64,000 nucleotides of DNA from Epiperipatus broadwayi (GCA_028023455.1 JAQFVV010000007.1:5146001-5210000), one strand, 5' to 3'; shown: positions 1 through 62,240, counted from the stretch's first letter. Program-made: numbers and translations. The notes: a model not told the origin generated them from the letters alone.

Positions 1-323
1 TAGAGGAATTGGCAATCCTCACTGTTTATAACTTACAAGCTTAAGAGATAGGTCATGTGATCTATGAAATGATCTATGACTTTTATTTTGACTATTTATA
101 GTCTTTGCCAAAAAGTCTTATGCAATTTTATATTGCTATGACTACTACTATGTGGCATGGCTGAAGATCTATCAGCCCCAAATAGCTATTTGAGTTGGAT
201 AGCTGGGTTTGAAGACATGTACATGTCTGAAAATTTCAGATTTTCCACTCAATAGATAACTTTTAGCTAAGTGCTTAGCTTTGGGTTGGTATTTTTAGAT
301 CTAGTGTCTGAACCTACCCTGAC

Positions 324-366
324 ACCTCTCTGAGGAGTGCCAAAGCATGAAACCATGGTCAGGGGT
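324..366 (+). ncRNA. Type I hammerhead ribozyme, array unit 1 (stem II closing pair G.U variant)
   Basis: ACCUCU-CUGAGGA-GUGC-CAAA-GCAU-GAAA-CCAUGG-UC/AGGGGU; predicted cleavage after 360 (GUC). Confidence 0.9.
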
Positions 367-758
367 TTGGGGAGGGGTTCCTGACAGAGATATTTTAAGT
401 GCTGGCTCTGGCTAAGCATTTATCATAAAGCTTGTAGAGGAATTGGCAATCCTCACTGTTTATAACTTACAAGCTTAAGAGATAGGGTCATGTGATCTAT
501 GAAATGATCTATGACTTTTATTTTGACTATTTATAGTCTTTGCCAAAAAGTCTTATGCAATTTTATATTGCTATGACTACTACTATGTGGCATGGCTGAA
601 GATCTATCAGCCCCATATAGCTATTTGAGTTTGATAGCTGGGTTTGAAGACATGTACATGTCTGAAAATTTCAGATTTTCCACTCAATAGATAACTTTTA
701 GCTAAGTGCTTAGCTTTGGGTTGGTATTTTTAGATCTAGTGTCTGAACCTACCCTGAC

Positions 759-808
759 ACCTCTCTGAGGAGTGCCAAAGCACGAAACCATGGAGCACAC
801 GGAAGGGT
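759..808 (+). ncRNA. Hammerhead, array unit 2, cleavage site destroyed
   Basis: Core, stem II and GAAA are intact, but TCAG at the GUC site is replaced by AGCACACGGAA (794-804). Confidence 0.85.
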
Positions 809-1200
809 TTGGGGAGGGGTTCCTGACAGAGATATTTTAAGTGCTGGCTCTGGCTAAGCATTTATCATAAAGCTTGTAGAGGAATTGGCAATCCTCACTG
901 TTTATAACTTACAAGCTTAAGAGATAGGGTCATGTGATCTATGAAATGATCTATGACTTTTATTTTGACTATTTATAGTCTTTGCCAAAAAGTCTTATGC
1001 AATTTTATATTGCTATGACTACTACTATGTGGCATGGCTGAAGATCTATCAGCCCCATATAGCTATTTGAGTTGGATAGCTGGGTTTGAAGACATGTACA
1101 TGTCTGAAAATTTCAGATTTTCCACTCAATAGATAACTTTTAGCTAAGTGCTTAGCTTTGGGTTGGTATTTTTAGATCTAGTGTCTGAACCTACCCTGAC

Positions 1201-1243
1201 ACCTCTCTGAGGAGTGCCAAAGCACGAAACCATGGTCAGGGGT
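1201..1243 (+). ncRNA. Type I hammerhead ribozyme, array unit 3 (consensus)
   Basis: ACCUCU-CUGAGGA-GUGC-CAAA-GCAC-GAAA-CCAUGG-UC/AGGGGU. Stem I has 6 bp, stem II has 4 bp closed by G-C, and stem III is the palindrome ACCAUGGU. Cleavage after 1237. Confidence 0.93.
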
Positions 1244-1635
1244 TTGGGGAGGGGTTCCTGACAGAGATATTTTAAGTGCTGGCTCTGGCTAAGCATTTAT
1301 CATAAAGCTTGTAGAGGAATTGGCAATCCTCACTGTTTATAACTTACAAGCTTAAGAGATAGGGTCATGTGATCTATGAAATGATCTATGACTTTTATTT
1401 TGACTATTTATAGTCTTTGCCAAAAAGTCTTATGCAATTTTATATTGCTATGACTACTACTATGTGGCATGGCTGAAGATCTATCAGCCCCATATAGCTA
1501 TTTGAGTTGGATAGCTGGGTTTGAAGACATGTACATGTCTGAAAATTTCAGATTTTCCACTCAATAGATAACTTTTAGCTAAGTGCTTAGCTTTGGGTTG
1601 GTATTTTTAGATCTAGTGTCTGAACCTACCCTGAC

Positions 1636-1678
1636 ACCTCTCTGAGGAGTGCCAAAGCACGAAACCATGGTCAGGGGT
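1636..1678 (+). ncRNA. Type I hammerhead ribozyme, array unit 4
   Basis: Identical to unit 3; cleavage after 1672. Confidence 0.93.
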
Positions 1679-2070
1679 TTGGGGAGGGGTTCCTGACAGA
1701 GATATTTTAAGTGCTGGCTCTGGCTAAGCATTTATCATAAAGCTTGTAGAGGAATTGGCAATCCTCACTGTTTATAACTTACAAGCTTAAGAGATAGGGT
1801 CATGTGATCTATGAAATGATCTATGACTTTTATTTTGACTATTTATAGTCTTTGCCAAAAAGTCTTATGCAATTTTATATTGCTATGACTACTACTATGT
1901 GGCATGGCTGAAGATCTATCAGCCCCATATAGCTATTTGAGTTGGATAGCTGGGTTTGAAGACATGTACATGTCTGAAAATTTCAGATTTTCCACTCAAT
2001 AGATAACTTTTAGCTAAGTGCTTAGCTTTGGGTTGGTATTTTTAGATCTAGTGTCTGAACCTACCCTGAC

Positions 2071-2113
2071 ACCTCTCTGAGGAGTGCCAAAGCATGAAAC
2101 CATGGTCAGGGGT
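2071..2113 (+). ncRNA. Type I hammerhead ribozyme, array unit 5 (G.U variant)
   Basis: As unit 3 but GCAU-GAAA; cleavage after 2107. Confidence 0.9.
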
Positions 2114-2490
2114 TTGGGGAGGGGTTCCTGACAGAGATATTTTAAGTGCTGGCTCTGGCTAAGCATTTATCATAAAGCTTGTAGAGGAATTGGCAATCCT
2201 CACTGTTTATAACTTACAAGCTTAAGAGATAGGGTCATGTGATCTATGAAATGATCTATGACTTTTATTTTGATTATTTATAGTCTTTGCCAAAAAGTCT
2301 TATGCAATTTTATATTGCTATGACTACTACTATGTGGCATGGCTGAAGATCTATCAGCCCCATATAGCTATTTGAGTTGGATAGCTGGGTTTGAAGACAT
2401 GTACATGTCTGAAAATTTCAGATTTTCCACTCAATAGATAACTTTTAGCTAAGTGCTTAGCTTTGGGTTGGTATTTTTAGATCTAGATCT

Positions 2491-2513
2491 AGCACGAAAC
2501 CATGGTCAGGGGT
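2491..2513 (+). ncRNA. Half hammerhead, array unit 6 (5' half deleted)
   Basis: A net 35-bp loss removes stem I 5', CUGAGGA and stem II 5' and duplicates ATCTAG. GCACGAAACCAUGGUC/AGGGGU remains. Confidence 0.85.
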
Positions 2514-2905
2514 TTGGGGAGGGGTTCCTGACAGAGATATTTTAAGTTCTGGCTCTGGCTAAGCATTTATCATAAAGCTTGTAGAGGAATTGGCAATCCT
2601 CACTGTTTATAACTTACAAGCTTAAGAGATAGGGTCATGTGATCTATGAATTGATCTATGACTTTTATTTTGACTATTTATAGTCTCTGCCAAAAAGTCT
2701 TATGCAATTTTATATTGCTATGACTACTACTATGTGGCATGGCTGAAGATCTATCAGCCCCATATAGCTATTTGAGTTGGATAGCTGGGTTTGAAGACAT
2801 GTACATGTCTGAAAATTTCAGATTTTCCACTCAATAGATAACTTTTAGCTAAGTGCTTAGCTTTGGGTTGGTATTTTTAGATCTAGTGTCTGAACCTACC
2901 CTGAC

Positions 2906-2948
2906 ACCTCTCTGAGGAGTGCCAAAGCACGAAACCATGGTCAGGGGT
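2906..2948 (+). ncRNA. Type I hammerhead ribozyme, array unit 7
   Basis: Consensus motif; cleavage after 2942. Confidence 0.93.
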
Positions 2949-3340
2949 TTGGGGAGGGGTTCCTGACAGAGATATTTTAAGTGCTGGCTCTGGCTAAGCA
3001 TTTATCATAAAGCTTGTAGAGGAATTGGCAATCCTCACTGTTTATAACTTACAAGCTTAAGAGATAGGGTCATGTGATCTATGAAATGATCTATGACTTT
3101 TATTTTGACTATTTATAGTCTCTGCCAAAAAGTCTTATGCAATTTTATATTGCTATGACTACTACTATGTGGCATGGCTGAAGATCTATCAGCCCCATAT
3201 AGCTATTTGAGTTGGATAGCTGGGTTTGAAGACATGTACATGTCTGAAAATTTCAGATTTTCCACTCAATAGATAACTTTTAGCTAAGTGCTTAGCTTTG
3301 GGTTGGTATTTTTAGATCTAGTGTCTGAACCTACCCTGAC

Positions 3341-3383
3341 ACCTCTCTGAGGAGTGCCAAAGCACGAAACCATGGTCAGGGGT
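3341..3383 (+). ncRNA. Type I hammerhead ribozyme, array unit 8
   Basis: Consensus motif; cleavage after 3377. Confidence 0.93.
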
Positions 3384-3769
3384 TTGGGGAGGGGTTCCTG
3401 ACAGAGATATTTTAAGTGCTGGCTCTGGCTAAGCATTTATCATAAAGCTTGTAGAGGAATTGGCAATCCTCACTGTTTATAACTTACAAGCTTAAGAGAT
3501 AGGGTCATGTGATCTATGAAATGATCTATGACTTTTATTTTGACTATTTATAGTCTTTGCCAAAAAGTCTTATGCAATTTTATATTGCTATGACTACTAC
3601 TATGTGGCATGGCTGAAGATCTATCAGCCCCATATAGCTATTTGAGTTGGATAGCTGGGTTTGAAGACATGTCTGAAAATTTCAGATTTTCCACTCAATA
3701 GATAACTTTTAGCTAAGTGCTTAGCTTTGGGTTGGTATTTTTAGATCTAGTGTCTGAACCTACCCTGAC

Positions 3770-3812
3770 ACCTCTCTGAGGAGTGCCAAAGCACGAAACC
3801 ATGGTCAGGGGT
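3770..3812 (+). ncRNA. Type I hammerhead ribozyme, array unit 9
   Basis: Consensus motif; cleavage after 3806. Confidence 0.93.
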
Positions 3813-6800
3813 TTGGGGAGGGGTTCCTGACAGAGATATTTTAAGTGCTGGCTCTGGCTAAGCATTTATCATAAAGCTTGTAGAGGAATTGGCAATCCTC
3901 ACTGTTTATAACTTACAAGCTTAAGAGATAGGGTCATGTGATCTATGAAATGATCTATGACTTTTATTTTGATTATTATCGCATATTTTGTAGAAATTAT
4001 TAGTAAAATAAAAAATTATCTATTGAAGATTAATAGAAGTTATTTATTGAAAGACCATATAAGAAGACTGCTTAAATATATATGTATTGTACCGGTCAAC
4101 TTCTTATTTCATTAATATGAGCATACACACAAATCAAACATGAAAAGAAATATGGCGACATGCTGGAATAAGGAGAAATTTAAATACTTTACCATAATGT
4201 TATTACAGATTCAGAAGATACTTATAAAAAGATTGATTCTTACATATCTTTGGGGGATGTCTCTAAATCAACCCTCGCGCCACTCCCAGAAGAAAAATTA
4301 ATTCTCCTCTTGAAAGGATATGCAAGTTCAACTATCATGGAGCATATATGAATATAAATAATTATTCAAACAAAACTAATAAACAAGTATCCTCGTGATA
4401 AATAAAGATCTAAGACCAGGTAAGATGATTTCCCATTTGCTAGCTCAGCGTACTCTATTTTCAGTTAAAAGAATGGGGATCGAAAAACTTGCATAATTAA
4501 TTAATAATATAGTTAAGAGAAAGTAAATGACAAAAAGAATAAATATATATATATATATGGCGATGGTCATTTTAAAATTATAATATAAATATTTTATTAA
4601 CCCATCACCCCATACCATTTATAATATGAATACAAAATTAATATTTCCAGATTGATTAAATATACGAAACAAATATTACACACTATATAAATCATTTTAA
4701 CAAACAAAACTATAATTGTAAAGAAATACTCGTCAAAGCAATCATTAAACTAAATAAAGGAAAATTTCTTTCTTAATAAGAAAAATGAATTAAATAATTA
4801 TACATGAGAGATAGTGATCTGTGGATTATAAACACACACACGTGAATTAAGCAAATAAGGAAAAATTAACAAGTTACATACAGGTGTGTTTATGTACGTA
4901 TTATGTACATCAGATATATATTTAGGAAATGCATATTAAATTTGAATAGAATAAATATACAAAAAAATAGTATACCCGATAAAGTCTATAAATCTACTGT
5001 AGCAAGGGCTGGACTTGACTGTGGCACAAGTTCATAGAATTGATCATCATCACTTTGGTGTTTAAATCTCGGTGTTTACATTCTATTGGGATGGCAGGAG
5101 CGGAGCTGGACAAGGGTGCTGAAGTGGGCTTCTACCCCATAATCATTCTATATGCAGGAAAGTGCTTGATTTGCATCTTTAGGCTGGACAACGGATATTA
5201 CACAGTATAAACAGTCTTTTTTTGTTTTACGGATTCTATGTTGATTACAGGCTTTAAGGGCATCTTGCAATTAAGCTTCCATTGGTATCAACTGAGTATA
5301 TGGTAGAATAAACATCTGTCCATCATTTAGTTTTCCATTAGTTGGCTAGATAACCGACGTTACTCTACACCACTTAATCGTCCGATGTTTAAATCGTCGA
5401 CTACGGACCGGTTAACTGTCAAATGATTATTTGAATGACTGCATGAATTAGTGTCCGTTGATTTAGAATGACAATGAATTTTTAATTAGAGTAAATCCCC
5501 ATGGATTAGGGTTAAGCAGAATTAGCATGCTTGCTCAAAAGGTTGCAAGACTTCATGTGGTTCCGTTAACAGCATTAGCTTAACAATAAAGTTAGACTTA
5601 GACTCCTAATAAGATTTGTCTTTGAAGAACAAAAATGAACTGCCTTCTCGCAACTTCAGAACTATCTCTCCAATTCTCTTTCAACTTGGGTATCCCCTCC
5701 AAGAAAGAAAAATCAATTAATTAAATCTTTTTTTGTTTTTTCTAATTAGTTTAGACGATTCATGAAACATTCCAATGCAATCACCTAAGTGCTTTAAGAA
5801 TTTGATTTCCAATTAGTTTTTTTTATATCTCCATTCAGATCACAATATCACTAATGAAAATTTTAATAAATGATAACATCTTTTTTATTTTGCTTTAGTA
5901 ATTACATTATCACAATCAAATTTTTTTAAAAAAAATATTTCACTTAAATTGGACATTCCTCTCTCCCAGCATTATCGCAAGTTTAATCAAGTTTTTTTTG
6001 TCCAGTTGAAATTATTTTAGAATGGACAGGAAATCAGAATGCCTTTAGGCTTATCTTAAATTTAAGACAATGACACCCCTCTCTTGCTCAAATGCAACAG
6101 AAGAGAAAAACAACTATTAAAATCTCAATTTTGAAATTAATTTTTAACTTATTTTTAAATAGTATTTCAAATTTTCCTTTTTACATTGGTTGTAAACATT
6201 CAAAAAGTAAATAAATACAGAATAACAATTTGCTAAATAAATGCTGTTTCTTTAACAAACAAAAAATATTTAAAATTATAAATACATTTTGGCGTTTATC
6301 TTTCTTTTTTTTAAAAAAAAACAAAAATCAAAAATACATATTTCTTAGCCTTTAAATATTGGCTTTAATCATATATGTGTGTGAGTTGATGTTATATCCA
6401 CAGTTCTCTTTTAATTTATAATAAGTTTGATTATAATATATAGTATACCCCCCATTTAATGGCTTTTTACATATTTTCGGCCATTAATTTGTTTAACATT
6501 ATCTTGTGCTTGGCCACATCAAATGTGCTTGGCACAATATACATATATATAATGCATACAGTACCTGTGACCATGTGTGAGTAGTTATCCATTTGCTTCC
6601 CCACAGTCATCAGCCAGTAGGTATTCAGAAGTTTCATCACTTATAACCACCACCTGTTTATAAGCCATTCAATAGTCTGCTAGAAAGGAATTTTGAAAGC
6701 ATCCATCATCCAGCTGGAAATATTAATTACATAAATTTTATATTTACGCAGTTTTAATCTACTAAATCTTATTTAATATTTTATATGTTGAGGTTTTGCT

Positions 6801-17566: not shown

Positions 17567-17664
17567 TTTTTTTTTCCCATGTGTCAAAGCATCAGCCGGG
17601 AAGCGAACCCGGGACAACTGCTTATAAGGCAGCCGTACTAACCACTCGGCCACCAACGCCTGAC
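17567..17664 (-). mobile_element. tRNA-Gly-derived mini-SINE with 12-bp TSD
   Basis: GCGTTGGTGGCCGAGTGGTTAGTACGGCTGCCTTATAAGCAGTTGTCCCGGGTTCGCTTCCCGGCTGATGC closely resembles eukaryotic tRNA-Gly(UCC). It has an A9 tail and TSD TATGAACTACAG at 17555-17566 and 17665-17676. Confidence 0.88.
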
Positions 17665-37012: not shown

Positions 37013-37110
37013 GTCAAGCATTGATGGCCTAGTGGTTAGCATAGCTGTCTTCCAAGCAACTGGCCTGGGTTTGCTTCCTGGTCAATGCATTTGACATGAA
37101 AAAAAAAAAA
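37013..37110 (+). mobile_element. tRNA-Gly-derived mini-SINE
   Basis: GCATTGATGGCCTAGTGGTTAGCATAGCTGTCTTCCAAGCAACTGGCCTGGGTTTGCTTCCTGGTCAATGC with a TCC anticodon, the same GTCA leader and TTGACA trailer as the other copies, and an A12 tail. Confidence 0.82.
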
Positions 37111-43411: not shown

Positions 43412-43872
43412 TGTAGCAGGAGTAAAAGGAGGAGGGACCTACTGTCAAAAGTAGAATATAAAAAAGGTCTGTAGTAGCCATCAATACCTCTTCTCTTCTG
43501 ATTATTCCTTTTGTTGCTATTGCTGTCAAAATTATTGTTGTTGATGCTGAAAAATCTTTCTGAAGACCAGTGCTGAAAAATTAAATACGAAAACTGTTTC
43601 TGCTGTACTTTAACAAGCTGAATCCTAGAAAGCCATTATCCAAGCTGTTCAAATGATGACCATTGGCTAGAGACAAGAGACTGCCATCTGCTCTTCCCCC
43701 GACTGCTACAGTGAGAGCTTTCTGAAGACCAGTGCTGAAAAATTAAATACGAAAACTGTTTATGCTGTACTTTAACTAGCTGAATCCTAGAAAGCCATTA
43801 CCCAAGCTGTTCAAATGATGACCATTGGCTAGAGACAAGAGACTGCCATCTGCTCTTCCTGAGACTGCTACA
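43412..43872 (+). mobile_element. Probable LTR with internal 162-bp tandem duplication of its 3' part
   Basis: TGTAGCAG...CTGCTACA 8-bp inverted ends; duplicated block starts at 43556 and 43718; short gag-like frame follows. Confidence 0.55.
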
Positions 43873-48959: not shown

Positions 48960-51006
48960 CTTCTATGTCCTTCAAATTTTTTTTAAATAATTTTTTATAA
49001 GAGCAAGATTATTTAGAGGCTTCCTTATATTATGTATGACCACACTAGATTGGCTTACAAAATTATTTGTCATTGTCATATATGCAGCTTTCTTGAATTT
49101 TCTTCTTTGCCTTTTTCCTCTCCAATATTTTTGTATGGTCATTAATGTATGCATGGTCTCCTACTATAGACACATCAATTTTTTATCTTTTAATAATTAT
49201 TTTGTGTTCTTTTAGTTGAGGTTTGACAGGGTGAATGGTTTCACCAATATACTCCCTCATTCCCTAGGTATTTCATAGATGCATTTTTTGTTTTTCAGCA
49301 GTTCAAGTTTAGGCTTGGTAGAAGTAAGAATTCTTCAAAGTGTAATAAGCTCTGAAAACTTGTTCTAATTTTATATTGACTACAGATTTTTTTAAATTTG
49401 TTCACCATTCCTGATATGAATGGATACATTAAAAGACCAATAATTGTCATTTTTTGTTGTCACATTTTCTTGTTTATTAAAGGTTTTCTTAATGACTGCT
49501 GATGGATAATAATTTTTATGAGAGTTTGTTCTATGAGCATTCTTTTCATTTTCCAAATCACTGGATTCTGAACAAAGTTCCTTTGCTCTGTTCCATAGTG
49601 ATAGTATACTTTCATGTTAAAAACTTCTAATATGATTGGATATATATGTCAAAGCCAGTGTGTTGGTTTCCTATACACTGTTGTTTTTTCTTTGATGTGA
49701 GGAAGTCTTGTCACAAGAACATCTAAGAATGTCAATTTTATTCTTGTTCTGATTCAATTGTGAATTTAATTGAAGATATGTTGTTGATATGCATCCAGAA
49801 TGACTATAATTGTACTTCACCATGCAGCCACACCATAGATATATCAACTTAGTGAAGCAGCACTTTAAGCAGACATGGAGTATTATTTATGACTGTGAAT
49901 TCAAGTTTTTCCATGTAAATGTTGCTCATCATGGGTGGTTGGTGATCACATAATCATCCCTTGATTTTGTTGAAAAAATTCTGAGTTGTATTGAAAGTAT
50001 GTTGCTGTTATGCAGAACATTAATAATTTCATTATACTAGCAATAAGTAGAGTTGTTTTAGATTGTAGACTATTATCATTATATAACATTTATAATAGAC
50101 AATGCCTCATCATATGTTACATTTGTAAATAAACTTTCCACATTGAAGCTTATCAATATGTCAGTTTTTTCCATTTTCATGTCATTGTCTAATTCTACAA
50201 AGTACTTAGAATTGCTGATGTAGGATTATGACAATGGACTAAGAACATTGAGAAAAAATATCAACAAACTTTGTCATGGTGAATTTCTAGAACCAACAAT
50301 AGGCCTTAATGGAACATTGTCTTTATGGATTTTAGATAGTTGATATAGGTAAAAAATCTTCTGAAATATGATTTTAATTTACTTTTTTTCTGAATCACTG
50401 AAATACCTGTGATGCTTCCAGAGTAATGCTTGTAATTTTACCTCTGTAGTCAGAATTGGATTTTTTGCTACCTTTTGTATTGGTCTTCTGTGAGAAGTCT
50501 GTGTATTTTGTTTTCATAATCAGTGTTATCCATAACAACTGTAATGTTACCTTTGCCAGCAGGGAGAAGAATTATAAAAGTATCCTGTTTTAGAGATTTA
50601 ATAGCTTTTCTCTCATGACATGAATGATATGTTTGATTTCTGCTTTCTCAAGTGTTTTTTCAACTCTACAACATAATGCTGCTACTTCTTCCAGATGCAA
50701 TTTTTGGGTAATCTCCTCAGTGGCTGCCATTTTATCCAAAAATGGGACAGTAGATGATGTAATGGCAAATTTCAAACCTTTTATAAGAATGAATAATTCA
50801 GCACCAATAAAATGTTTAGAACTAAGATTTTTCATTGTTGAAGCTGATAGATTACTAGTTGCAGTATGACTTTTGGATTGCCCATGTAGATTTAATAACT
50901 TCTTTTTCCTAAATGCCTGAAGAATGGTGGAGAATACTATGCAAAATGTTGTCATTATTAAGCTGTGTTGTATATTTGTCTGTTGCCAATAACAAGTTGT
51001 TTGCAT
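48960..51006 (-). mobile_element. Decayed Penelope-like element (RT + C-terminal GIY-YIG)
   Basis: N-terminal LSSKHFIGAELFILIKGLKFAIT; RT thumb FLDVLV...VYRKPTH; GIY-YIG CIYEIP (~49262-49285) and YIGET (~49237-49254); C-terminal VGDHA and RRKFKKAAYM. Confidence 0.88.
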
Positions 51007-55657: not shown

Positions 55658-58600
55658 TGCTATGTCCAGCAGTGACCAACTTACAGCACAGATGGATTGC
55701 AAATTTAATAGAAAAAGATGACTATAATATAATCACAGGCTGCATGGCAATTTAAATTATAGTATTCCTTTAATTATAAACAGTTATTATAAATGTTCTT
55801 TTATCATCAACATGCGAAGTTAGAACTTGCAAATACAACAAGTTTGAAGCAGTTGATTTATGTGGGTCCTACGACCAGGTACTACTGTCTCAAGATATTA
55901 ATTAAGAGTCTGGCAAATAGTTCTCAGAGAGGCCAGTTTGGCAAGGCTGACAATAATTGTCAGTGGAAGAAACATGTCTGTTCTTCAAGGGCTACAAATA
56001 GCTAATGATTTCTCTTCCCCCTTCTGGTGAAGATCACGGTTCAAGTTTTCATTCTAATAATCTAATTGGTTGGAATCCACCAGTACCATGTGGTAGTACC
56101 AATGTTATTACATTCCAACCTGCATTTTTGTTTAATCAATCATAATATGAGTTCTTATATTTTTAATTAATTTTGTTTTTTGGGTTTCAATAAAAATACG
56201 CATTTGATCAGATTTTTCTAATACATGTGTATTTAGCACACCTCCTCCCAGTTCAGAGATCAGAGGGGTTTTGTTTTCTGCCCTCTGAATTAAGAGCATA
56301 GTCACCAAAGTGGGCAGGGGTTTTCCTCTTGCACTTAGGATATAATGGGGTGTTAGATTTTAATGATGCAAAATTATTAGCATTAGGAGTTTTTCCGTTT
56401 TTGCTTTCGATTTAACTTTGAAAGTAAACTTGCAGTTATTCCTTCATAGTTGCTTGATATGCTTACAAAGTACTTTTGCATCTGCCATCCAGATGGCAAC
56501 AACTTGATTACTCAGGTGTACTATTTCTCCACCAGTCCACTTTTTATCTTGATTATTTTTGATCCAAATGTGGTCAGTAGGTGAAAATTTATTTATGATA
56601 TCTGTGGGTGGTTTGACATCCTCAGTTTTCATGTGATGGTAGTTTTGATTTCAATGATTGGAGAGCTGGTATTTGACCTTGTTTTTTCCAGTATGTAATT
56701 TAATTCCCAATCCTGAACCATTTGCGGCCAATGAGAGGATTTATCTTGGCGTGGACTATGTATAACAGTAGTTTCCAGTTCTTGGCATTACTAATCATGA
56801 CAAGAACCTGGATTTAGCCTCTAATGTTAATGGCATTACCATTTATATCACAAGCTTCTAAGTTTGGCTTTATTATCTTAGGGGGATGTGTCATGTCAGC
56901 AACAATGGTTTTCCATTCTCTAAGAGAGATCAAGGATACTCCACTACCGCTGTCTATTTCCATGAAAACACTTTTTCTAAAGATTTTTAATATCATTTCA
57001 ATTTTATGATCTTATTATCTTTGGGGGATGTGTCATGTCAGCAACAATGGTTTTCCATTCTCTAAGAGTGATCAAGGATACTCCATTACCGCTGTCTATT
57101 TCCATGAGAACACCTTTTCTAAAGATTTTTAATATCATTTCAATTTTATGATCCAGGTCAGATGACATGTTATTTTTGTGAGTAGATTTGTCTTTAGTAA
57201 GGCACTCCTGGTGTTTTTTACTTGTATAGTCAACAGATTTCTTTTTTCGGCACATTTTCTCTAAATGGCCAATTTTTTACAGTTTCTGCATTGTTGATCT
57301 TTATAAACAAAATACTTAATATTGCTTTGAATATTCTGCATTGTGTTATCTTGCTGGGGTGCACTTCCTTCTAACTTATCAACCTTAGCTATTTTATAGG
57401 GATTGCTGTCCGATAATTTGATGGCTGTGAATTCTTTTGATTGAATAGTCTTGAGCTCAAGGGCTATTCCACACTTGATAGCTTCTTTGTAGTTGATGTC
57501 ACTGTCAGCCAATAACTTCTGTCTCAAGGTGTCACTAGTCATACCACATAAAAATTGTTCAAAAAGTGCTTCCTCCAGGTATCATTTGTAGATGCAGTTC
57601 TTGGCCTATTCTCACAGGGCCATATTATATTCTTGAGTATGCTCATTCTTTTCTTGATGGCAGTTCCTAAAATGGAGTCTGGCGATGTGTCTAGACTCAT
57701 GAGGGTTTAAGTACTCAGCTAATTTCTCTTTGAGCTGCTGAAACATTAGATCTTCTGGGGTTTTAGTTCAGCCAGTCTGTTAGCAATATGAATAATGCTT
57801 CTCTCTATGTAGCACAATAACATCACAGTTTTAATTTTGTTGTTTTATATTCTATTAATGACCAGGAGTTTCTCAATTTGTTGGATGAAGAGGGGCCATT
57901 CGCTTGCCTATGTGACGTCAAATTCCGATATTGCCAACTGCATTACAGTATATATAATAAATCACTTTAAATTTTTCTTGCTTATGAGAAATGAATAGTT
58001 TGCTTACATGAGTTAATTGAACTAAAATTTTTTCTTCTTCTGCCTGTTACATAATCTGATGGGATTTCAACTGTCAGGGTTCATTCACAATGACTGCAAC
58101 AATTGCTATGTCCAGCGATGACCAAGTTACACCACAGCTGGATTGCAAATTTAATAGAAAAAGATTACTAATATAATCACAGGTGGCATGGCAATTTAAA
58201 TTATAGATACTCTAATTATAAACAGTTATTATAAATTTTCTCTTATCTTCAACATACAAAGTTATAACATATGAATACAATGTGTTTGAGGCAGTTGATT
58301 TATGTGAGTTCTATGACCAGGTACTGCTGTCTCATTATATTAATTAAGAGTCGGGAAAATTGTTCTAAGAGAGGCCAGTTTGGCAAGGCTGACAATAATT
58401 GTCAGTGGAAGAAACATGTTTGTTTTTCAAGGGCTACAAATAGCTAATGGTTTCTCTCACCCCTTCTAGTGAAGATTGCGGTTCAAGTTTTCATTTAATA
58501 ATCTAATTGTTTGGAATCCAGTGGTACCACATGGTAATACCAATGTTATTACATTCCAACCTGCATTTTTGTTTAATCAATCATAATAGGAGTTCTTATA

Positions 58601-59278: not shown

Positions 59279-62240
59279 TATCATAATCATCATTGATCAA
59301 TCCACTGCAGGATGAAGGTCTCTCCAAGTTCAATCCATCTTCTCTGATCTTTAGCTTCTATTCTCCACATCATTTCTGCACACTTTCTTATTTCATCCAT
59401 CCATCTCACTTGTGGTCTCTTTCTTGGTCTTTTATAATCTCTTGGAATCCACTTTAAGATTTCAATTGTCCATCTATTATCATCTATTCTAGCAATAAAT
59501 CCAGCCCAACTCCACCCCAGTCTTTTAATTTTTTTTAATGAGGTCAGTAACACCTGTTTGTTCTCTTACCTATATATTGCATTTTTGAACTTTTCTTGTT
59601 ACTCCCAACTTGCATCTCTCCATACTTTTTTGAGCAGTCTGAAGTCTCTGTATTGCTTGTCTACTAAGGATCCAAGTCTCAGGTTCATAAGTAAGAACTG
59701 TTAAAACACATTTATTAAAAACCCTTCCTTTTCAAACACATAGGCATATTTCCTTTTAGTATCAAGTTATTTCTACCAGAAACACTCCAACCAAGTTTAA
59801 TTCTATGATTAATTTCATCCATTATGTTTCCATCTATATTAATAATCTGACCAAGGTATTTGTAGCTGTTAACTTCTTCTAACTCATCATAATCAATCTT
59901 TTATTTTCATATTTTGAGAAAATCCATTAAACATTACTTTGGTCTTTTTAACATTTATCTTTAGTCCTACTTTCCTACTGTCATCTGATAACTCCTGCAA
60001 CATTTCATGCAGCTCTAAAGCATTATTTTCAAAAATAACTACATCATATGCAAAATCTAAATGACTTAAATAATCTCCATTTGCTTTCACTCCTTTAGCT
60101 TCCCATTTTAATCCACAAAACACCTCTTGCAGCACTGCTGTAAAAAGTTTTGGAAATATGGAGTCACCCTGTCTTACACCCTTCTCAATGTTGATTTTCC
60201 TAGTATCATTATGTAATCTAATTGTTGTGGTTGCATTTTTATAAATATTCTTTAAAATATGACAATATCCTGAATTTATACCTTGATGATCCAATGCTTT
60301 AATTACTGAAAAATGTTTATAGAATCAAACGCCTTTTCATAATCTACAAATCCAAAGCATAATGGCAACTCATATTCATTTGTCCTTTCAATAATTTCTC
60401 TCAATACCTGGATATGAGTGTACTAAAAACCATTTTTAAATTCAACTTGTTCTCTTGGTTGGTGGAAATCCAAAGTTCTCTGTAGACGAGTTGTAATTAT
60501 CTTGGTAAAAAATTTGTATAAAACTGATAAAAGGCTGATAGATCTGTAATTTCTAATATCTTTTTTATCAACCTCTTTTAAATATTAATATTGCATCCTT
60601 CCATTCATCTGGTATATCTTTATGATTTAGACATTTGGTATATAACTGTGCTAAAAAATGGTCTATTTCTTCACCTCCTTCTTTTAAGATATCAATTATA
60701 ATTCTATCATTACCTGGAGCCTTTCATTATAAATTTAATTGCATGTCTCACTTTTTCATTTAAAATTCTAGGCAATTTGGAAGAGATATTAGATATAGGA
60801 GGTACTTGTTTTTATTATTACATAATACTTGATAGAAGTCTTCTACTCATTTTATGATGTCATCTCTCTTTTTTTCTTATTGCAGATATAAATTTCCTAC
60901 CAATACCAAAATGTTGTTTTACACTCTTGAGACTTTTATTCTCTTCTATAGCTTTCCTTGCAAGCTCACAGTTATGCTTTCTTATTTCATTTTCAACTCT
61001 TTTCTGCACCATTTTACAAAATTCGAGATATTCAATCATTTTTAATGCATCATTTTTGTATATCTTCCTATTCATTCTTATCCTCATAAATTCTCTAGTC
61101 TCAATAGAAATTTTATTGGTCAATTGCTGCTTTTTTCTACCAGCTATCTTTGTTCCAGTTTTTAAAAGTGTACCAGTTATTTTCTTATTAATTTCATTCA
61201 AATCTGAATCATGTTCAAAATCTACTAATACTTGAAACCAATTTGTAAGTTCTAATTTAAATTCATTAGAATATTTCTAAGATTAGGAATATCAACTGTA
61301 ATTATTGTTAATATCAATTGTAATTGTTGTTTTTCCTTATAATTTTTGTCTCTCTAGTTTTGCATTAACATGTATCTTATATCTTACTAATCAATGATCA
61401 CTTCCTCTGTTAAGTTTATTAAGAACATTACAATCTTGAAATATATATTTTCTATTAATCAAAATATTATCCAATTCTGCTGTACCTTCATTTGGATCCT
61501 TCCATGTCCATTTCCTTGTAACATTTTTCTCAAAAAAAGAATTCATAATATAAAGGTTTTTTTTTCTGCAAACTTCACAAATTTATGTCCTCTCTCATTT
61601 CTATTCCCATAAACAAAATTACCTATAGCACTTTCATCTTTCATTGTTTACCAATTCTAGCATTAAATCTCCCATAACAATTTAAAATGTTGTTTACTCT
61701 GATCAAAAGCCTTTTGTACATCCATATAAAAATCTTCTACTATTTCATCACTATGAGAACTTGTCGGGGCATAAACCTGAATTATCCATGTGCTATTAAG
61801 TTATATAATTAATCTTGCCACTCTGTCCAATACACCATGAATCTCCACAATGTTGTTCTTCCACTTTTTATTTATAATGAATTCTACTCCACTTCTATTT
61901 CCAATATTTGTGCCTTTATAATAGAGTACATGTCCACTTTTCAAATCAATTGTCTCTTCACCTTTTCTTCTAACTTCACAATGTTCAATAATGTCCCATT
62001 TAATATAAGACAGTTCTTTTTCTAATTCTTGTAATCTTCTTTCACTTGAAGTGGTTTGCAGTTGTAAGTGCCTAAATAAAATGTCATTATTAAATGGCAG
62101 CCTGGGTCCACAATCAGGGGATTCTTAACATCCTCCACCTTTGGCCACCAACCACTGTCTTGGTTGGTGACTTTACAACCTCCTGGGAATAAAGGCCATG
62201 ATTTATTTTTGTCTGTCATGATTGTATATATCTATTGGAA
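59279..62240 (-). mobile_element. Decayed near-full-length RTE-clade LINE
   Basis: ATG at 62219; APE motifs IIQVYAPTS and IVMGDFNARIG; RT KGVRQGD and degenerate FADD; C-terminal WAG.IAR..DNRWT...W.PR...RW.D; TGA-type tail. Confidence 0.92.

Follow-up and report, generated by a model that had tools for sequence, protein, structure and literature searches.

How a short non-coding repeat built around a hammerhead ribozyme comes to stand in long tandem arrays, and which machinery inserts it, is the question raised by the first 4 kb of a 64,000-nucleotide stretch of the Epiperipatus broadwayi genome (C7:5146001–5210000 of the 5.6-Gb assembly; hereafter the window). Tandem repeats with type I hammerheads define the metazoan retrozymes that lack long terminal repeats (non-LTR retrozymes), described in 2020 (Cervera and de la Pena, NAR; PMC7229834), and a link between retrozymes and Penelope-like elements (PLEs) has already been argued (PMC7229834; bioRxiv 10.64898/2026.07.22.740005). 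The proposals of a PLE helper in these two sources rest on common hammerheads, tandem organization, co-occurrence and similarity to the pseudo-LTRs (pLTRs) of PLEs; insertion anatomy, with inverted arms, fixed 3′ ends and a tail, is not described in either. The array in the window is interpreted here, with a probability of about 0.7, as one insertion of a young, high-copy, non-autonomous metazoan non-LTR retrozyme that was mobilized by a PLE.

A young hammerhead repeat family

Unit position 1 is the A immediately 3′ of the GUC cleavage site, and window 1238–1672 serves as the reference unit. Tandem Repeats Finder (TRF) detects a head-to-tail period of 435 nt with 98–99% matches over window 1–3977, and the anchored unit starts are spaced 434, 442, 435, 435, 435, 400, 435, 435 and 429 nt apart. 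The initial annotation, made from the window sequence, had set the array at 1–3977 on the + strand; the 435-nt tandem organization and the strand stand, but a BLAST search with the reference unit places the true start 475 bp further left, at C7:5145526 (unit position approximately 28–30). With the 10 kb to the left included, the whole array measures 4452 bp, or approximately 10.2 units, and its right end at window 3977 corresponds to unit position 171. The window copy is a single + arm, truncated at its 5′ end at unit position ~30 and ending at the ‘long’ 3′ site described below. Its GC content is 38%, compared with 28.7% for the window, and its longest open reading frame (ORF) does not exceed 50 aa, in line with the lack of coding capacity noted earlier.

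In a genome search, the unit matched at least 300 sequences spread over many contigs, almost all at 99.5–100% identity; the first-look candidates number 551, itself a lower bound. This identity, together with intact target-site duplications, supports the recent amplification that had been proposed from the similarity of units within the array. The family is thus both dispersed, with target-site duplications, and organized as short tandem repeats that have one hammerhead per unit, low GC content and neither LTRs nor coding sequence, which are the features expected of a metazoan non-LTR retrozyme, a class with units of approximately 150–450 bp.

Insertion anatomy of the arrays

The mode of insertion is legible at sister loci, the census of which rests on approximately 25 mapped loci. 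At about 18 of some 23 loci, an array on the - strand is followed directly by an array on the + strand, so that the two arms meet at their 5′ ends and have their 3′ ends on the outside; the tail-to-tail arrangement was found at none of the approximately 25 mapped loci. The inner junctions are located at scattered unit positions and display 1–3 nt of microhomology, apart from one that carries a 27-nt filler instead. The outer ends are confined to two clusters that account for all 23 of them, a ‘short’ cluster at unit positions 102–107 (10 ends) and a ‘long’ cluster at 164–189 (13 ends). Each of the eight complete insertions (C12544, C12397, C6309, C843, C13, C86, C21 and C6315) combines one short with one long end, on either side, a pairing with a chance probability of approximately 0.004 if the ends were independent. 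The two clusters are read as two start sites of reverse transcription, and the stretch between them, from ~105 to ~170, as corresponding to the PLE ‘tail’.

Sister arrays abut their target duplications directly. The duplications are 9–15 bp long at eight loci and include CCCAAAGGC, CTATATACCAC, AGTGTGAGTT, AAATTGTTATAAT and GAATTCTAGT; their edges overlap the arm ends by 1–7 nt. At two loci, the arm opens with bases of the target rather than those of the family (GTTATAAT in C13, TACA in C6315), as priming from nicked target DNA predicts. Taken together, these features record target-primed reverse transcription in which both nicked strands served as primers and the template either exceeded one unit in length or had no end, and they bear out the earlier supposition that the element depends on the reverse transcriptase (RT) of another element.

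PLE insertions typically combine partial tandems with a neighbouring copy that is inverted and truncated, and have a tail on one side (Craig et al. 2021, PMC8557442). Purified PLE protein cleaves and extends both strands in vitro, and reverse transcription starts at two internal RNA sites that are located downstream of the hammerhead and are not homologous to the target, the genomic ‘tail’ being the stretch between them (Frangieh et al. 2024, PMC11167929). Retrozyme insertions share with PLEs the tandems with an inverted, 5′-truncated copy (at the sister loci, the window locus being single-armed), the pair of internal start sites, the tail confined to one end, the use of both strands as primers and the AT-rich targets; unlike PLEs, the retrozyme has no ORF for an RT or endonuclease (EN). 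The first start in the biochemically studied element lies approximately 85–92 nt past the ribozyme cut (PMC11167929), whereas the retrozyme clusters lie approximately 105 and 170 nt past it.

Units beside the inner head-to-head junctions are far more damaged than the outer ones, with many 1-nt deletions and 70–97% identity (for example L028 2372–2967, L019 2367–2860 and L012 2354–2968) compared with 99.5–100% for outer units. Error-prone late synthesis, instability of the long palindrome or assembly error in hairpin-forming DNA could each account for this damage.

Penelope-like elements in the same genome

The GIY-YIG domain has 10,242 first-look candidates in the genome, with open frames of up to 901 aa, and the close pairs among the 150 candidates listed are arranged 20 times as - then + and never as + then -. 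A compound insertion of an apparently intact PLE occupies positions 258–8617 of L039 (C12394:20942001–20951000); in it, an inverted 5′-truncated arm (258–1338) precedes 2.3 tandem copies with a period of 3135 bp. These contain two open ORFs of 875–877 aa that combine RT and GIY-YIG domains (RVT_1, 44.8 bits; C-terminal GIY-YIG, 39.4 bits). The insertion is bounded by a target duplication of approximately 10 bp (GAATTG plus TATT microhomology), and one of its outer ends is ~132 nt longer than the other. Its anatomy is the same as that of the retrozyme arrays. Whole PLE ORFs gave no match against Pfam, probably owing to composition bias, and separate domain pieces scored above the cut-offs.

A unit-like stretch with 73% identity is located 300–700 nt upstream of an intact 800-aa PLE ORF on the minus strand (C6200:4546600–4552599). 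It is the sole match of a BLAST search with the unit against seven PLE loci. It was considered as a pLTR of this PLE and rejected, as it is missing from the element’s 3′ untranslated region (UTR) and alignments with other PLE families begin no earlier than the ORF start. Because the 3′ UTR lacks it, the stretch is most likely a neighbouring relic, an older relative of the unit. Stems I and II of its hammerhead are kept by compensatory changes and helix III is a longer palindrome (ACCAAUUGGU), and the core is mutated (A9U and G12A).

Different PLE families have in common a conserved motif in their 3′ UTRs, composed of CUUGAAAA(A/U)G, a hairpin and GU(C/U)GAAAC(G/A)UUG (L039, 5270–5345; L047 and L045, sense strand, ~4110–4165; L037, ~2120–2190). 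The hairpin stem GACUAU/AUAGUC is common to two PLE families and the retrozyme hairpin at the ‘long’ site (unit positions 165–178), in a different geometry. This unproven lead could reflect an element recognized by the RT or a coincidence.

Hammerhead ribozyme and predicted RNA fold

Rfam model RF00163 (Hammerhead_1) matches seven of the nine window units on the + strand over its full length (1–45), the other two being broken, which agrees with the initial annotation of one type I hammerhead per unit; the cuts predicted from these alignments, after positions 360, 1237, 1672, 2107, 2942, 3377 and 3806, coincide with those it listed. The seven units have the hammerhead core of CUGAGGA, GAAA and GUC, which conforms to the conserved CUGANGA and GAAA with a cleavable GUH triplet, and the full-model alignment defines three helices with helix I open, the type I topology. 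A 31-nt core string is found eight times, compared with zero expected from shuffles. Stem I (ACCUCU/AGGGGU), stem II (GUGC-CAAA-GCAC) and the palindromic helix III (ACCAUGGU) are all as first described. The hammerhead had also been called minimal: stem I is indeed 6 bp long at the core, but it runs on, as the first part of a predicted imperfect helix of ~60 bp that pairs unit positions 1–62 with ~343–404. With helix I extended in this way, the hammerhead would sit in a rod-like closing stem, like that of published retrozyme circles.

In one of the two broken units, which is 442 nt long, an 11-nt aberrant stretch (GG-AGCACACGGAA-GGG, window 796–806) stands in place of the GUC/A site; in the other, a 35-bp deletion (BLAST break 2486/2508) takes out the 5′ strand of stem I, CUGAGGA and the 5′ strand of stem II. 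The extra unit to the left of the window has a mutated 3′ strand of stem I. Rfam reported no further hammerhead in the remainder of the 64-kb window. Two candidate lines of evidence were set aside: scars at the cleavage site as a sign of linear-monomer templates (2–3 of approximately 21 variant junctions lie at the site, with unclear enrichment), and covariation from diverged copies, most of which are full of 1-nt deletions and uninformative, with compensatory changes found in the C6200 relic alone.

The + strand monomer has a predicted minimum free energy (MFE) of -150.6 kcal/mol (z -6.97 against dinucleotide shuffles) and, folded as a circle, reaches -147 kcal/mol with 69% of its bases paired, in keeping with the highly self-paired RNAs of metazoan non-LTR retrozymes. 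The - strand folds at -114.3 kcal/mol, 36 kcal/mol worse. This difference, which is due to G.U pairs, points to selection acting on the + RNA. A predicted hairpin between the two 3′-end clusters may serve as an RT-binding module.

Taken by itself, the 47-nt ribozyme pays +1.4 kcal/mol to form helix III as a monomer, with 2 bp and a CAUG tetraloop, and two copies cofold as a double hammerhead with a common 8-bp helix III at -31.2 kcal/mol, compared with 2 × -11.8 kcal/mol for the separate copies. The earlier suggestion that cleavage would proceed between tandem copies agrees with these in silico values, in which helix III is unstable in the monomer. A dimer requirement is unproven, as some invertebrate hammerheads with a 2-bp helix III cleave well as monomers (PMC7229834).

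At one sister unit junction, a local inversion is centred on the helix III palindrome CCATGG (...CCAGACCATGGTTTCGTGCTTTGG...), which suggests a strand switch at the palindrome. Contigs from runs of other organisms diverge a few bases before the cleavage site of window 1021–1455 (for example ...GAAACCGGUC/UGAGG...), and their sequences suggest that related species have sister hammerhead families in which the palindrome of helix III differs. The retrozyme family is very abundant and variable in runs of the organisms coded A and C, and 31–81% of its 31-mers are present in DNA runs of three further coded organisms. In the contigs of four runs (75–115 Mb, library type unknown), no molecule ends are visible; their summed word depth is very high, variants are numerous, and the joints include tandem ones of the ‘goes back 435’ type and a single ‘opposite strands’ joint.

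Weighing the explanations

The alternative that deserves most attention, although it appears less likely than not, keeps the PLE machinery but has a donor array transcribed into a long multimer that is not cleaved and serves as the template, with the hammerhead dispensable for mobilization. In vitro, PLE insertion was unaffected by hammerhead mutations and mainly used unprocessed RNA (PMC11167929), and many arrays are heterogeneous, as such a transcript would allow: in the window array, C16054, C12462 and C7055, units differ from one another at the family polymorphisms 180T/C, 144A/T and 233T/A. Array C12397, by contrast, has a private variant, 28A>G, in all seven units that cover position 28 and in both arms, as predicted for a single small template. 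Of 103 sampled unit junctions, 82 retain a perfect hammerhead 3′ half; folding strongly favours the + strand, and related retrozymes accumulate chiefly as circles (PMC7229834), all of which speaks against an uncleaved multimer.

Mobilization of the same element by the RT of a long interspersed nuclear element (LINE), with inverted arms produced by L1-type twin priming, is improbable. In twin priming, said to have been set out by Ostertag and Kazazian in 2001, a second nick reportedly primes on the same RNA and yields an inverted 5′ part, microhomology and target duplications, as a minority outcome that starts from the poly(A) tail. The inverted 5′ segments, microhomology junctions and 7–20 bp duplications that it leaves would resemble those seen here, the window contains RVT_1 fragments that are not obviously of PLE origin, and LINEs have been left open as possible mobilizers (PMC7229834). 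Inversion is nevertheless the rule in this family, from two fixed internal sites and with no poly(A) or 3′ tail; two such starts with a one-sided tail are reported to be unique to PLEs (PMC11167929), and the genome contains an intact PLE of identical insertion anatomy.

Explanations that dispense with reverse transcription fare worse still. Plain satellite DNA, shaped by unequal crossing-over, reintegration of extrachromosomal circles and fold-back replication, with the hammerhead as an inert relic, is very unlikely: it would account for the tandem organization, the length variants of 400, 429 and 442 nt and the result of a run search, which found no run on record as RNA, but not for dispersal to many contigs with target duplications of 9–15 bp, 3′ ends that are fixed while 5′ ends are scattered, retained primer-derived mismatches or the strand asymmetry of the RNA fold. 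The inverted subrepeat arrays and 9–13 bp duplications reportedly resemble those of Drosophila FB elements, and a fold-back DNA transposon, with long inverted terminal arrays of subrepeats and a duplication of ~9 bp, moved by a transposase, might thus be considered. Its likelihood is close to nil, as the termini differ by ~65 nt (~105 versus ~170) and are imprecise by several nt, and the microhomology with the target, unequal arms, random inner junctions, single-arm copies and absence of an associated transposase do not fit such an element.

Equally hard to credit is the idea that an autonomous PLE copy multiplied its pLTRs to form the array; in its favour, PLE pLTRs bear type I hammerheads and occur in tandem (PMC8557442). 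A tblastn search with three resident PLE proteins found no PLE ORF within 20 kb upstream or 60 kb downstream of the array, and target duplications bound sister arrays directly. The initial annotation had favoured a free retrozyme over pLTRs attached to a PLE ORF and had pointed to the sequence left of the window as the place to look; that sequence holds the remaining 475 bp of the array and no PLE ORF in 20 kb, and none lies in the 84 kb around the array, which upholds its view. The sole tblastn match to a PLE RT in this region (window ~50091–50348, - strand) is weak, contains stop codons and is located 46 kb from the array.

Several observations weigh against the preferred interpretation of a PLE-mobilized retrozyme copied from a circle. 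Polymorphisms mixed within arrays are not expected if one monomeric circle is the sole template, and, as noted above, the run search found no run on record as RNA. At the window locus there is no inverted arm and no convincing target-site duplication between the left and right flanks, the sole common word of which is a 7-mer, TTATTAT, 31 nt from the left junction and at chance level. Four sampled PLE families have neither homology to the unit nor an Rfam hammerhead (Rfam found none in seven PLE loci, L039 included), and the 3′ UTR of the C6200 PLE has no unit-like sequence of its own. Finally, the retrozyme tail, at ~63–70 nt, is longer than the 30–40 bp reported for PLEs.

Proposed cycle

We infer transcription, cleavage and circularization of the RNA, and the help of a PLE. 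In this cycle, the tandem units would be transcribed as + strand RNA, and the type I hammerhead of each unit would cut after GUC, probably as a double hammerhead formed through the palindromic helix III. A host RNA ligase would then close the 435-nt monomers into highly base-paired circles. The PLE RT/GIY-YIG protein would nick both strands of an AT-rich target, ~10 bp apart, and each 3′-OH, aided by 1–7 nt of microhomology, would prime reverse transcription at one of two fixed internal RNA sites (unit positions ~105 and ~170). The RT would copy several units, either by circling a closed template or by travelling along a multimeric one; between the two templates, the circle is slightly favoured. 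Joining of the two complementary DNAs head-to-head through microhomology would yield an inverted pair of tandem arrays with a target duplication, one ‘short’ and one ‘long’ outer end.

A more specific version, put forward tentatively and with somewhat less than even odds, is that array pairs are born in a single integration, in which a dimeric PLE RT/EN uses one start site per protomer and copies one circular RNA repeatedly. If so, the arrays would be the first direct footprint in a genome of a ribozyme-made circular RNA having been copied by target-primed rolling-circle reverse transcription, and would show a PLE seeding satellite DNA in one step.

Features of the window

The features of the array are compiled in Table 1. 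Elsewhere in the window, an RVT_1 fragment (59893–60291, - strand, 42.8 bits) is located ~56 kb from the array and is unrelated to it. Two tRNA-like sequences (17588–17659, - strand, 39.3 bits; 37018–37089, + strand, 30.5 bits) score just over the Rfam threshold and have mismatched D-arms; they may be heads of tRNA-derived short interspersed nuclear elements or pseudogenes. Other young two-copy tandem duplications are present at 43556–43872 and 56870–57153, with periods of 162 and 142 nt and 96% matches.

Table 1 Features of the retrozyme array, in window coordinates
Feature	Position	Strand	Basis
Tandem array of the 435-nt retrozyme unit	1–3977	+ (all units)	TRF; BLAST of the reference unit
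Reference unit, the predicted monomeric RNA (linear after cleavage, circular after ligation)	1238–1672	+	100% identity with copies on many other contigs
Intact type I hammerhead, predicted cut after C1237	1201–1243	+	RF00163, 34.3 bits (gathering score 34), E 6e-06
Identical intact hammerheads	1636–1678, 2906–2948, 3341–3383, 3770–3812	+	RF00163, 34.3 bits
Hammerhead with C>U in stem II (423C>T), giving a closing G.U pair adjoining the core	324–366	+	RF00163, 29.5 bits, under the gathering score
Hammerhead with the same stem II variant, predicted cut after 2107	2071–2113	+	RF00163, 29.5 bits
Dead hammerhead, core and stem II intact, cleavage site TC/AG lost	759–806	+	Sequence; 2-mismatch pattern match at 765–795
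Dead hammerhead, 35-bp deletion at 2487 (unit positions 380–414), 400-nt unit	2481–2507	+	Sequence; TRF 400-nt period
‘Short’ 3′-end cluster, unit positions 102–107, ...CUGUUUAUAAC	1339–1344	+	10 outer ends across loci
Predicted hairpin between the two 3′-end clusters, unit positions 119–164	1356–1401	+	MFE and centroid structures
‘Long’ 3′-end cluster, unit positions 164–189, around small hairpin GACUAUUUAUAGUC	1401–1426	+	13 outer ends, including that of the window
6-bp deletion within palindrome GACATGTACATGTC, unit positions 290–295, giving a 429-nt unit	3667–3672	+	Variant list; sequence
Right flank of the array, unique AT-rich DNA	3978–4040	.	Flank comparison

Relation to known systems and significance

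The element resembles the metazoan non-LTR retrozymes in having a type I hammerhead in each short, non-coding tandem unit, low GC content, no LTRs, a highly self-paired RNA, target duplications of more than 4 bp and a genome with many PLEs. The repeats of coral, mussel and axolotl retrozymes, also with type I hammerheads, are 170–400 nt long (PMC7229834); the 435-nt unit is slightly longer and unrelated in sequence, and expression and circles have been demonstrated for those retrozymes, whereas the present one is known from DNA sequence alone. The retrozyme is a new family of a known class, an ordinary member that leaves the classification unchanged.

Amphibian hammerhead repeats, among them newt satellite 2, act as double hammerheads; the present repeat resembles them in its tandem context and in a helix III that is weak and palindromic and is predicted to form only between two copies. 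Unlike in newt satellite 2, helix III of the monomer is a 2-bp stem with a CAUG tetraloop, similar to invertebrate hammerheads (PMC7229834). The plant LTR retrozymes are likewise non-autonomous and hammerhead-processed, with circular RNA (which in the present case we infer), and have type III hammerheads in their LTRs, a primer-binding site and polypurine tract, 4-bp duplications, Gypsy helpers and high GC content (Cervera et al. 2016, PMC4918200).

The mobilizer of retrozymes and the origin of their tandem arrays have so far been argued from co-occurrence and pLTR similarity. The value of this family lies in its insertion scars, still legible because the family is very young; through them, an animal retrozyme is linked to the PLE type of target-primed reverse transcription, with two start sites and both strands in use. 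In its duplications, paired start sites, inverted arms and primer mismatches, the data set agrees in each respect with what the sole biochemical study of a PLE reported, and both the PLE-helper hypothesis and a rolling-circle origin of satellite DNA become directly testable in this species.

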